Origin: Chlorokybus atmophyticus
Lineage: Eukaryota > Plantae > Mesostigma and Chlorokybus algae
Direction of reading: 5' to 3'
DNA length: 64,000 bases
NCBI GenBank assembly: GCA_009103225.1
Contig: RHPI01002262.1
Coordinates: 474,317-538,316, forward strand
The position numbers were made by a program, and so were the translations under genes. The notes under the pieces are model-generated. The model was given only the letters and a program-made list of their open reading frames with translations. It did not search any database and had not been told where the DNA came from. Positions 53,643-60,660 of this stretch are shown piece by piece. Numbering within the stretch: the first letter of the stretch is position 1; every line of letters starts with the position of its first letter.

Positions 53643-55624
53643 TCATTCTCTTGTTGTCCCTGATGGGTCAGCATTTGCAACAATCCAAGGGTGCTCCAGC
53701 ACTTTCGCGAGAGGCAATCGCTGCTTTGGGTCCTTCGCTAGCAGCTGCGTTACAACAGTGTGTCAGCAGAAGAAGAGAGGTCATTGCAGGTGCTTGTGCT
53801 GGTCACAATATGTGGTATAAAAGATAGCAATTATGAATTGACAAGCACAAGCACAAGCACACGCGCACACACATATACAACTGCACAATGCAAGAGTCCT
53901 CACCTTAACGATGAGGTTTTTAGCATCAGTGCTGACTGCCGGCATTTCGGGGAATCGCAAGTCCACGCGCGTAATGCTGCGCACGCATGCATTCGTAAGT
54001 GGCAAGCCATCGTGCAACCTGAGAGCAGAGCATATTATGCCAAACAACTGTTGAATGCACACCGTTTGTATGTCTCGCTGTGTCCTGCAGCCTCAAACGG
54101 CGGATCTCCAAACAGAAACTCGTAGCACAGGACACCGAGAGACCACACGTCCACGCAAGTGTCATGTTCTTTGCCCTCCACTGCAGCATTACTAGTCAGC
54201 ACATGTGCAGCTTCCACAACTATCGACACAACATGTGAAGTTGTAATGCACTGCAGTTACAACAGCAAGCTCACCCATCTCGGGTGGGAGGTAGTCGAGA
54301 GTGCCGCACAGTGTTTGACGGCGGCTGTTTAAGGCGTGTACTGCCCAGCCAAAGTCTGCAATCTTGAGTTCACCCTGCATTCGACACTCTCACGCTTACT
54401 TGCTTCATTGATACACTAGTGGCTGATAATGCCATGTCACATGCAGTGTTGTTCCAAATCCAATACAACGATACCGGTGCCGGTGCATTGTGCATTGTTC
54501 GATTGCGTACCTTTGCACCAATGAGTATGTTTTCTGGTTTGATGTCTCTGTGAATGACGTGCTTGGAGTGGCAGTAGACAAGCGCCTTGGTCAGAGCAGC
54601 AATGTACTGCTCAAACACAACACGTGTTTGATACAGTGGCAGCAAGGGAGGTGTCCAGGGAGGTAAGGTACGGGACAAGGCGGCCACCCTCACCGTTGCA
54701 GTGCGGCGCTCGCTGAATGTCTTGCAGCGCTGCAGCTCTTTGTACAGCTCGCCACGCGCCGCATACTCCAGAATAAGAAACACGCGCGACTGAACACAGC
54801 ATGTGTGTGCAACCAGCAGATAACTTGCAGGGTTGATGGACAGGTCGACAAACATGTGATCTCACCTCGTCGTAGAAGTACCCAAACAGGCGCAGAATGT
54901 TTGGGTGGCTGCGCAAACAAGCAACATGTGAGGCATTGACAGCCAAAGTCGCAACGAATGGACAATGATTGGAGTTGCTTTCTGCAATGCTTTTTAGTTG
55001 CGCCTAAGTACTGTACCGAAGGTGGCTCTGGATCTCAATTTCACGCCGCAGCTGGTGCTCAACTTGCGAGTGCTGAAGCTGCGACTTGAACAGCACCTTT
55101 AGTGCTACAATGAACTTCGTCTGCATCATGAAACCCAAAACAGTGTGGTCACGCACAGCAGATACCAAGCCTTGTTGTGTACACAACGTGCACAGCGTAG
55201 CTGCTGAGTAAGGACTGTGATGCAGTGCTGGCTTACCCGCTTCTCACGTGCCAAGTAAACATTGCCAAACTTCCCTCTTCCCAAAGGCCTCCCAACTTCA
55301 AAGTTGCTTAGTTGCCACTGCTCGTTGGGCGCTGTGCGTGCTGAAGCCGTTGGAGGCCTCACGACAGGCTCAGCTCTGTGTGCCTGGCAGTGCACAAACA
55401 CACAATCTGTCAACCGGTCTCAGTGATGGCCACCAGTGGACAGATGAACATGCTACACAGGTGTGGATGTAAATGCAGACAACAAATTCCTCCACAAACA
55501 CTGCCCAGCATTGTGGCAAATTCCAGCCGCAAACAAGCCACTCTCCCGCTCTACTTGCCTCGCTGTCTTCTGCAGCCTGCTCCTGCCGTCGCCGGCTCTC
55601 CTCCGCAGCAGCACGGGCGGCCAT
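53643..55624 (-). CDS. AUR: Aurora kinase (plant alpha-Aurora-like), multi-exon
   Basis: [26 protein letters not shown]; [28 protein letters not shown]; [13 protein letters not shown]; [12 protein letters not shown]; [10 protein letters not shown]; [27 protein letters not shown]; [13 protein letters not shown]; [33 protein letters not shown] (stop 53643-53645). ATG at 55624. Confidence 0.97.
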
Positions 55625-55918: not shown

Positions 55919-57221
55919 ATGGCTTTCCGCGTGGCTGCGAGAAGACTCGTCGTTGTTGGTTTGGAGGGGTATGATGCGCATGCCGCCCGGTCTGGCGTCT
56001 TCGGCGGCCGACGCCTACTTGCGGATGACGGCGCTGCCAAGCATGCCGGTCACAGAGGTGATGCCAACTTGTCATTGCTGTCAGCATGGGATTGCGTCAT
56101 ACCCGGTTAGCTTACGTGCAGCATGCATGCTAGCATGTTGTGGACTTCGCATTGTCCGAGTCTTCACTCTGCGCTTGTTGCACGCGCTTTTGCCTGCTGC
56201 AAGAGCTGATGCCAGCAACCAATGAACAGACAAGGTGCAAGCAACTTTGCATTTATTGCATACATTGAGCGCTGTGCATATCATCCTGCAATGCATGTTG
56301 AATCAGTCAAGCCGAGCGCTGTGTCTAGTTCCATAACCACAACCCTCCAAACAGCTGGTCATGTACTGATCGCAAGGCAACTCGTACAGGCGACTCTTGT
56401 TCTGCTGCATCCACTTCAAGCCCTACACAGGAATGCCACACCACTAGGCGGGTACACAGTTCCTTGCGCACTTTCTCTCTCAGCCAGCACGAAAGGAGCT
56501 GGCACTCACAGCACGCAGAGTGCATTAGTGTTCGCACATGCTCGACAACCACAACATCAGCAACAGAGAAACCATCTGACCTTGCGGGAGGTGGAAATGT
56601 TGAAGGCAGTCCTCAGGAAGGCAAGCCCGTGTTGATATACACTGGCCCCATGTCGGGATCAGTTAAGGGGGTCAAGCTGCTGAGCCTCAGCAGCGCCATG
56701 CTCACGCTGGTCGGCGCGCCACTCTTTGTACTTACCAATCCGAACCTTTCGCCCACGGGGCGTATAGCCATTGCCGGCACAATGATATTCTTTGGACTTT
56801 CCACCACGGCTCTATTGCACTGGTTCTCAAGGTGAACCCCTGCATGCTTTCAATTCCTGCAATGAATTTCATGCTGTATGCACACACCACAGGACTCACA
56901 ATGTTGTATCAGTCGAGCATTGTGTTGTGTCTTCAGTGCAGTGTAATGCTTCTCACATGCATGTTCTCCTCTTCCTGCAGCACGTATGTGCACAAGATGT
57001 GGGCGATACGTGGTAGTGATCGCGTTGAGGTGGAAGTGCTGAATGTCCTTGCGTCAAAGAAGCGCGAGGCTTTCTCACTGGGGGATGTGCAGTACTCGCA
57101 AACCCTCCGCCCGCTGGTTTCGTTTGAAGCCGACAAAAGGCAGTATTATGTTGATGAAGAGGTTCTTGATGAAAACGTGCTGCGACAGCTGATGCCTTGG
57201 CGAGTTCCAGAAGACTTGTAA
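55919..57221 (+). CDS. TMEM70/TMEM186-family mitochondrial inner-membrane protein (ATP synthase/complex I assembly factor-like)
   Basis: Presequence-like N-terminus MAFRVAARRLVV; LIYTGPMSGSVKGVKLLSLSSAMLTLVGAPLF..IAIAGTMIFFGLSTTALLHWFSR|TYVHKM fits the two-TM pattern of the family; last exon ends PWRVPEDL*. Confidence 0.75.
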
Positions 57222-58619: not shown

Positions 58620-60660
58620 CTACGCGCGAGATTTTCCTCCAGAAACATTCAACACTGTACCGTCCACGTAGCTGGAGCGCTGTGATGCCAAGAAAGCGAC
58701 TGCCAAGCAGACAACCGATCAGCGGCATGCCACTGCGAGATTATGACAAGCTAATTGACGTATGCAATTGTTAGAAGAGACCAGTGACAACTAGGAGCAT
58801 GACTGCATGTCAACAACTAACTGCATTACAACGTATATGACATGGCTGTAGAGCAGGCATACCTGCATTGGCAACCTCCTCAAGAGCGCCGGGCCTGCCC
58901 AAAGGCACATTGGAAGAGCCATAGCTTCCCTTCATTGCCTCCACGGTGGTGCCGCGGGTGTATGCAAGGGCGCGCTCGTACTCGGGAGAGCGCAAGCCAG
59001 TCGGCCGGAGGATGCCGGGGGCAAGACCGACAACGCGGATGGCGTGCTTACCCAATTCCTATAAGACCAAGTCAGCCATTGGCAACAGAAGGCATGCTGT
59101 AGGGCCACATGCAGCTCAAGTTGGGCTTGGGTGCTCATCGCCTAGCAGTATGCTCCAGCATTGTCATTATGTTTGTACCTTCGCCCATGAGCGTGTCATT
59201 GAATATAGAGCAGCCTTTGTGGCAGCATACACGCTCTGGCCCTCTGAGCCCTCCAAGCCCGACTCTGATGCCATGTTGATAATGACACCAGGGCGGCAAG
59301 CCTGCACAGTGCATGTGTGAGCCATTGTCCACTTCCTGCTCGTCATGCTACCACTGATGCATGCAGCCACTCACCTTGATCATCTCACGTGCCACAGCCT
59401 GCGCCATCAGGAAGCAACCCTTCATGTTGACATCGGAAACCTGGTCCCAGATCTCCTCCGTCAGTTCCTCCTGACCCGCGGGATCAACAAGCAAGCGGGG
59501 GATATTGATGCCGGCATTGTTCACCTGCATGACAAACACTGAGAGACATGCATAGGCCACGCGTGAAATCAAACGATTGACATCGTGGTAGACTCTCACC
59601 AAAATATCAATCCTGCCGTACTTCTCGATCACAGTAGCCAATAGATTGTTCACGCTTTCAACATTGCTCACATCCACACCATGGCACATATGCTGGTCGA
59701 TGTTGTCAGGGTAGAGGTGGTTCAGCTCTTCCAGCACCTTTTGGTTCTTCTCTGGGCTGCGATCCGCAATCACCACCACAGCACCATTTGCAGCCAGCTC
59801 CAAGCACACAGCACGGCCAATGCCAGAGCCACCACCTGAAATTGATCCGATCAGCACTAGCTTACCACATTCCCTTGCTTCGCTTCGAGGGCAAAGCAAT
59901 AAGCACTGTTTATAAGTATGCTACCTGCACATGCACGCTGCCTTGCTGACAATCAATACTGCTGCAAGGCTATGCAGCTTGCAACGATGATATGCGCCGA
60001 AACACTCAACATCAAGACCAATACCAAATTAGCCAACACACAGTAGGTAAGACAACCAGCGCACCTGTCACGATGACAACGCAGCCGCCAATGTCGAGCC
60101 AGTTCTCATTGCGCTTGGTGTCCAGCGGCTTGAGGATGGGCAAGGGCTGCGTCTTGACTTCAGGCTCTGCAACTGCCCGAGTGACGAGGGTGGCAGCTCT
60201 GCGGGAGGACTGCGACGTCTTCAAGGCCAGCGGCACCTTGCTGCTCAGGAAGCTGGAGTTCAACCGCTCATTTCCCCTCTGCTGTGCACCTGCACATCCG
60301 TCCACTCAGCAGAGCGCTTGAAGTGCCGGTTGCACACACCCTATGCGGTAGCAACGCAGCCGCGTTTACATAGTACGCATGCACATAGTACACGTTACTT
60401 GGCCTATGCGGTAGCAACGCAGCCGCGTTTACATAGTACGCATGCACATAGTACACGTTACTTGGCAATACAAGAAAAGAAACTGCAAGCCGTGCGCTGC
60501 CTCAACTCAAGCAGTTAACAGGCTACCGCTAGCAGATCAGTTTGAAAAGGACTGTTGAGGAGCTGCATGCACAGGCTGGCGCACCTGACGGCGTGGAGGT
60601 GGAAGCTCGCAGAGACAGCACAGCAAGGCTCTCAGCATGGACAGCGGCAGTGGAAACCAT
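58620..60660 (-). CDS. Short-chain dehydrogenase/reductase of the bacterial sorbitol-6-phosphate 2-dehydrogenase (SorD-like) type with N-terminal plastid transit peptide, ~361 aa, 7 exons
   Basis: Exons 60660-60585, 60289-60065, 59835-59600, 59524-59375, 59301-59179, 59058-58863 and 58699-58620 total 1086 nt, all GT-AG and in phase. Motifs: NWLDIGGCVVIVTGGGSGIG; VNNAGINIPRLLVDP; MASESGLEGSEGQSVYAATKAA; ELGKHAIRVVGLAPGIL..TGLRSPEYERALAYTRG; PLGRPG..EEVA; SYVDGTVLNVSGGKSRA*. Confidence 0.88.
60340..60465. repeat. Exact 63-bp tandem duplication in intron 1 of the SDR gene
   Basis: CCTATGCGGTAGCAACGCAGCCGCGTTTACATAGTACGCATGCACATAGTACACGTTACTTGG occurs at 60340-60402 and 60403-60465. Confidence 0.95.

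Follow-up and report, generated by a model that had tools for sequence, protein, structure and literature searches.

A predicted gene on the minus strand (58620-60660) of a 64,000-nucleotide stretch of the genome of the alga Chlorokybus atmophyticus (contig RHPI01002262.1; 'the window' below is this whole stretch) encodes a short-chain dehydrogenase/reductase (SDR) of the family NF004817 (PRK06171, 'sorbitol-6-phosphate dehydrogenase subunit'). The data as a whole are probably best explained by an intact gene of the alga itself, coding for an NAD(H)-type member of this family that is of bacterial origin, has gained a presequence and acts on sorbitol-6-phosphate and fructose-6-phosphate. The structure of the gene, its membership of the family at the level of single residues and its nesting among bacterial sequences are the parts of this reading that the analysis shows.

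The gene consists of seven exons and six introns, all with GT-AG borders when the minus strand is read and then spliced, and the spliced coding sequence (CDS) of 1086 nt translates into 361 amino acids with one stop at the end. Introns 1-6 measure 295, 229, 75, 73, 120 and 163 nt, with phases 1, 1, 0, 0, 0 and 1. An upstream start exon is required because exon 2 holds no in-frame ATG and the next methionine lies beyond the nucleotide-binding motif; the ATG at 60660 stands in a favourable context for initiation, with A at -3 and G at +4. A first-pass annotation of this DNA had described an SDR with six spliceosomal introns and a set of named motifs, all of which are present at the expected residues: VTRA/VAEPEV at 61-70, TGGGSGIG at 100-107 (interrupted by intron 2), IADR at 123-126, NNAG at 181-184, GINIPRLLVD at 184-193, the SE.GLEGSEGQS.YAATK block with Ser241, Tyr254 and Lys258 at 241-258, and TGLR.PEYE.ALAYTRG at 290-306. 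The classical SDR features (TGxxxGxG, NNAG and Ser-Tyr-Lys) are found, and Pfam PF00106 (adh_short) matches exons 3, 4 and 5.

Profile and database searches were run exon by exon and with stop-free references of 153 aa and 183 aa spanning exons 3-4, and the joined 361-aa model entered local alignments, tree building, the counting of residues and scoring with a proxy profile. NF004817 is the best NCBIfam match of exons 4, 5, 6 and 7 and of the exon 3-4 read-through; exon 6 matched almost no other family, and for exon 3 alone generic SDR models score best, with NF004817 at ~33 bits. As whole proteins, members of the family from Clostridium pasteurianum, the Phycisphaerae (P0034) and an uncultured bacterium (P0007) reach 434, 364 and 358 bits on NF004817 (cut-off 304), and P0173, from a second algal clade described below, reaches 308. 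With a proxy profile derived from the clade of phosphotransferase system (PTS) operon enzymes, the Chlorokybus protein scores 384 bits, bacterial members 404-428 (P0007 416, P0002 404) and P0173 340. Interpolation from these scores very likely places the Chlorokybus protein above the NF004817 cut-off, at ~335 bits.

Among the 76 family-invariant columns, defined by a conservation of 97% or more across 224 bacterial members, the algal protein keeps 72, which, together with the best matches of exons 4-7, bears out the earlier assignment to a bacterial SorD/GutF-type family. The four deviations are the bacterial start methionine, A103G, E288R and L312M. In the substrate-loop region, which is normally variable, 16 of 18 invariant positions are kept. 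Asp125, directly after beta-2, is 100% conserved in the 224 bacterial members, and this conserved aspartate fits the use of NAD(H), as had been predicted. A search of a protein atlas returned generic SDR clusters only. Two other types of enzyme were considered and rejected: the E. coli SrlD type (NF009050 / PRK12384), which matches exon 3 only (40.6 bits) and none of exons 4-7, and the plant aldo-keto reductase type, as the algal protein is an SDR by Pfam.

The family is overwhelmingly bacterial, and bacterial contamination, a chimeric assembly or a dead gene would account for its appearance in an algal contig, but this is highly improbable given six canonical spliceosomal introns inside the domain, a spliced frame that is open, the invariant residues retained and eukaryote-type split genes in flanking DNA of matching GC content. 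Contamination and a pseudogene were rejected on these grounds. The GC content of the CDS is 0.576 (0.669 at third codon positions, GC3), and that of the introns, 0.495, equals the GC content of the window. Neighbouring open reading frames (ORFs), judged by eye from their fragments, resemble split eukaryotic genes.

The mature domain is 63-66% identical, over 270-272 columns, to the proteins P0007, P0011, P0004 and P0002 of uncultured bacteria, and the search with the 183-aa reference returned bacterial proteins of 270-275 aa, the named ones coming from metagenome-assembled genomes of Planctomycetota and Phycisphaerae. The nearest relatives belong to uncultured Planctomycetota, Phycisphaerae, Lentisphaerae, Spirochaetota and Fibrobacteres and are annotated as 'sorbitol-6-phosphate dehydrogenase subunit'. 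A quick tree rooted on an outgroup places both eukaryotic groups deep within bacterial diversity. In a careful tree of 51 rows (LG+C20 PMSF), the Firmicutes PTS clade is separate at 99/95 and the algal protein lies outside it, in a poorly resolved grade of sequences of the PVC (Planctomycetes-Verrucomicrobia-Chlamydiae) type; internal branches are weakly supported, and all near relatives are bacterial except one algal clade. A bacterial origin of the gene is well supported by these alignments and trees, and the horizontal acquisition proposed in the first-pass annotation, for which a phylogeny of the mature domain was the check, agrees with the nesting and with the identities to bacterial proteins.

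A search of representatives in all libraries, with no length limit, gave nothing closer than 54% over exons 3-4; a scan of metagenome contigs with exon 4 found bacterial-type loci only, at up to 80% identity, and no alga-like orthologue; and a scan of genome contigs with exon 6 peptide patterns found one distant gammaproteobacterial relative among the matches listed. Among other eukaryotes one clade with the family was found, in data where 50%-identity clustering and length limits could hide algal orthologues of 330-400 aa. Several of the top all-library matches (P0121, P0124, P0127 and P0130) are calls of truncated or frameshifted genes on long contigs from ENA; one of these contigs was inspected, that of P0121 (ENA ctg339207_4x_l), and it proved to be a bacterial assembly from long reads at low coverage. 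Calls of this kind can be taken for mis-spliced eukaryotic genes.

The one other eukaryotic clade comprises P0173 (308 aa) and four relatives at 65-86% identity (P0271-P0274), five environmental sequence clusters in all. Its loci (L001, 8001-8927; L010/L011, 10001-10921) are intronless and lie on gene-dense contigs of 67% GC with few introns, with split SERCA genes, VTC and a PsbQ-like gene nearby; among named sequences, the SERCA fragment matches those of trebouxiophytes best, at 62-64%, and those of land plants next. Because of the PsbQ-like and VTC neighbours and the trebouxiophyte-like SERCA, the clade is assigned to an uncultured green alga, and the family is present in two or more groups of the green lineage. 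Chlorokybus is thus not alone in having the gene: the uncultured clade carries the family with an N-terminal extension of its own, which is basic, acid-poor and 35-45 aa long, and keeps 67 of the 76 invariant residues.

Both groups could descend from a single, very ancient acquisition within the green lineage (or from a later transfer from alga to alga), with retention in two groups and loss elsewhere. The best maximum-likelihood tree unites the Chlorokybus protein and the P0173 clade weakly (72/83), five derived residues are shared, two of which (Met219 and Asp348) each occur in only one of the 224 bacterial sequences, N-terminal extensions are found in both groups, and the P0173 contigs come from a green alga. 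However, the support is weak and both branches are long (0.79 and 1.21), the two groups are ~50% identical to one another, less than either is to bacteria, and, when either group is left out, the remaining one is placed beside different bacterial sequences. Furthermore, no named alga or plant is found among the 120 best relatives of P0173. A single old acquisition, as against two transfers, is therefore no more than a tentative proposal, to which we give somewhat less than an even chance.

Bacterial proteins are homologous from residue 88 onwards, which leaves an N-terminal extension of 87 aa that consists of a presequence-like part of 64 aa and a mixed-charge linker of 23 aa (residues 65-87). 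None of the bacterial homologues has this extension, for which there is no family match in NCBIfam or Pfam. Residues 1-64 contain 13 Ser, 6 Thr, 10 Ala, 6 Arg, 2 Lys, no Asp and 2 Glu, with a net charge of +6, a composition that plausibly fits a plastid transit peptide. The first-pass annotation had described an extension of ~65 aa, rich in Ser, Ala and Arg and ending VTRA-VAEPEV; composition and end stand, and the full extension, including the linker, is 87 aa. Import into the plastid appears somewhat more likely than import into the mitochondrion.

The proposed substrate is linked to the operons in which bacterial members of the family occur. In the L-sorbose-type PTS operon of C. pasteurianum, the SDR is found with EIIA-D and a Zn-dependent dehydrogenase; on L. 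plantarum plasmids, a regulator and a Zn-dependent dehydrogenase lie divergent from SDR-EIIABCD; and the operon of Klebsiella pneumoniae holds a regulator, the SDR and EIIABCD, followed by an annotated sorE (L-sorbose-1-phosphate reductase). The SDR at this position is SorD/SorF, D-glucitol-6-phosphate dehydrogenase. The gutF product of lactobacilli and Pediococcus is described as a sorbitol-6-phosphate dehydrogenase that feeds fructose-6-phosphate into glycolysis (PMC5723342).

The surroundings of the closest environmental relatives were surveyed at 80 metagenome loci recovered via exon 4, of which 33 are flanked by 1.5 kb or more on either side, with probes for the sorbose-type PTS only. Several results of this survey and of the analyses above weigh against the reading preferred here. 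Sorbose-type PTS genes were found at none of the 33 well-flanked loci (glucitol-type PTS was not probed), and a Zn-dependent alcohol dehydrogenase lies within 300 bp at 13 of them. The algal protein is only 53%, 52% and 56.5% identical to the PTS-operon enzymes of Klebsiella, L. plantarum and C. pasteurianum, respectively. Its Arg288 (59007-59005) takes the place of a family-invariant glutamate in the PG-x-x-x-T segment beside the active site, which the 224 bacterial members and the other algal clade have without exception. The exon-wise NF004817 scores sum to ~265 bits against the cut-off of 304, with each piece paying end penalties. No solved structure of the subfamily is present among the PDB sequence matches, and exon 6 alone has neither a PDB nor a Pfam match. 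At the putative VTRA/V cleavage site, the arginine at position -2 also fits a mitochondrial presequence. Finally, a review says of Streptophyta that, in contrast to many air-exposed chlorophytes, they do not build up polyols as osmolytes (PMC4873514; see also PMC3749462).

The seven contigs that were inspected likewise hold no PTS, and in four of them a Zn-dependent dehydrogenase of 324-345 aa adjoins the gene. This two-gene module with a Zn-dependent dehydrogenase was seen at L015, L016, L017 and L005/L006, in addition to the 13 of 33 loci within L019-L098. For the Zn-dependent partner, no curated family was reached above its cut-off. Because PTS neighbours are missing and a Zn-dependent dehydrogenase is paired with the gene, sorbitol-6-phosphate is itself only a putative substrate of the nearest bacterial relatives. 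The earlier claim that the conserved sequence blocks mark enzymes of PTS operons holds for the separate 99/95 clade and fails for the nearest relatives of the algal gene.

The algal enzyme, with family and bacterial origin unchanged, could alternatively resemble its nearest bacterial relatives in having some other anionic sugar, polyol phosphate or sugar acid as its substrate, unrelated to sorbitol. The gene contexts just described, the absence of a curated family for the Zn-dependent partner, sulfatases nearby in two loci, the position of the algal gene outside the PTS-operon clade and the replacement of Glu288 by arginine all point in this direction. However, PTS-linked and PTS-free members have 28% of the columns invariant in common, much of the substrate loop among them, and PTS operons also hold a Zn-dependent dehydrogenase (SorE), so that the pairing is common to both. 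We regard a different substrate as unlikely, since the invariant substrate loop favours a common substrate across the PTS-linked and PTS-free clades, as far as can be judged from conservation. For the PVC-type branch, the automatic name 'sorbitol-6-phosphate dehydrogenase' may be wrong in thousands of database entries.

In the preferred reading, with sorbitol-6-phosphate and fructose-6-phosphate as substrates, the gene would have been acquired long ago from a bacterial donor near uncultured PVC-type lineages, and not from PTS-bearing Firmicutes or Enterobacteria. After the transfer it would have gained six spliceosomal introns, a host-like base composition and the 87-aa N-terminal extension. 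The protein would then be imported into an organelle, the plastid being a somewhat likelier destination than the mitochondrion, where the presequence would be cleaved off. The Asn-Ser241-Tyr254-Lys258 tetrad, together with NAD(H), would convert a ketose phosphate into a hexitol phosphate and back, the most probable pair being fructose-6-phosphate and sorbitol-6-phosphate. Substrate, direction of flux, compartment and physiological role are inferred parts of this reading. That an intronised bacterial metabolic gene is present in the alga is well supported, and, with its putative retargeting, it makes a sound, fairly ordinary case of old gene capture.

The physiological role suggested earlier, that of sorbitol as an osmolyte, was speculation and is weakened by the report that Streptophyta lack polyol osmolytes (PMC4873514). 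Neither a phosphatase of the haloacid dehalogenase (HAD) type nor a Zn-dependent dehydrogenase partner was found within the 64-kb window. The literature search returned nothing on an algal sorbitol-6-phosphate dehydrogenase or EC 1.1.1.140 in microalgae, and nothing on polyols of Chlorokybus, Chlorokybus in lists of horizontal transfers or sorbitol synthesis in trebouxiophytes. A far-reaching version of the hypothesis, which we consider quite improbable, would have an organellar NAD-dependent route from fructose-6-phosphate to sorbitol-6-phosphate acquired once before the split of streptophytes and chlorophytes, surviving in Chlorokybus and uncultured chlorophytes; it would be the enzymatic means by which air-exposed green algae make sorbitol, and would differ from the aldo-keto reductase route of plants. 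If fructose-6-phosphate is indeed reduced in the plastid, a subaerial relative of land plants would possess a simple route to sorbitol in a lineage said to be without polyol osmolytes, and one more metabolic gene would join the bacterial genes acquired by early streptophytes.

The coordinates of the gene and of the features within it are collected in Table 1. Intron 3 is in frame and, if retained, would add 25 residues just ahead of the NNAG motif without truncating the protein. The tandem duplication in intron 1 probably reflects a recent slippage or duplication event. Outside the gene, ORF fragments at ~54370-55410 on the minus strand resemble a split Ser/Thr kinase (Aurora-like, with an HRDIKPEN motif) and a fragment at ~56460-57220 on the plus strand resembles a gene for a small membrane protein; these kinase-like and membrane-protein-like neighbours support a native eukaryotic setting.

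Table 1. Features of the predicted dehydrogenase gene, with positions numbered from the first letter of the window.
Feature	Position	Strand	Description
Exon 1	60585..60660	-	Start codon 60660-60658 and first 25 codons of the N-terminal extension; donor GTGCGC
Exon 2	60065..60289	-	Remaining extension to 60105; dehydrogenase domain begins at 60104 (NWLD...VTG)
Exon-2 part of the 64-aa presequence-like region	60174..60289	-	Ends VTRA before VAEPEV; joins exon 1; putative cleavage site
Exon 3	59600..59835	-	Glycine-rich NAD-binding motif and beta-2 with Asp125 (59764-59762), to IDILV; Pfam adh_short 53.6 bits
Exon 4	59375..59524	-	NNAG and the family-specific GINIPRLLVDPAG..ELTEEIW segment; NF004817 52.4 bits
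Exon 5	59179..59301	-	Ser241 (59268-59266), Tyr254 (59229-59227) and Lys258 (59217-59215); NF004817 67.3 bits
Exon 6	58863..59058	-	Substrate-loop region: PG motif, TGLR.PEYE.ALAYTRG; NF004817 84.8 bits
Exon 7	58620..58699	-	C-terminal strand, GGKSRA end, stop TAG 58622-58620; NF004817 26.4 bits
Intron 3	59525..59599	-	75 nt, in frame, stop-free
Perfect 63-bp tandem duplication in intron 1	60340..60466	.	2.0 copies, 100% matches

Among known systems, the closest sequences are those of the uncultured bacterial members, which fall in the same part of the tree as the algal gene but are intronless, lack the extension and are often accompanied by a Zn-dependent dehydrogenase. The second green-algal clade is likewise eukaryotic, belongs to the same family and has N-terminal extensions, but it is only ~50% identical to the Chlorokybus protein, its genes are intronless, its extension is shorter and fewer invariant residues are kept. 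With SorD/SorF/GutF (EC 1.1.1.140) of Klebsiella, Lactobacillaceae and Clostridium, the algal protein has in common the SDR subfamily, the family blocks, the catalytic tetrad and the NAD-type aspartate. It differs from them in its introns, its 87-aa extension and the arginine in place of Glu288, whereas the bacterial genes are parts of L-sorbose or sorbitol PTS operons and group in a clade of their own. Enzymes of the E. coli SrlD/GutD type share the name of the reaction and the SDR superfamily with the family of the algal protein, but belong to a different subfamily. Finally, the aldose-6-phosphate reductase of Rosaceae (EC 1.1.1.200), an NADPH-dependent aldo-keto reductase, likewise yields sorbitol-6-phosphate, but does so from glucose-6-phosphate and with a fold unrelated to that of the algal SDR.

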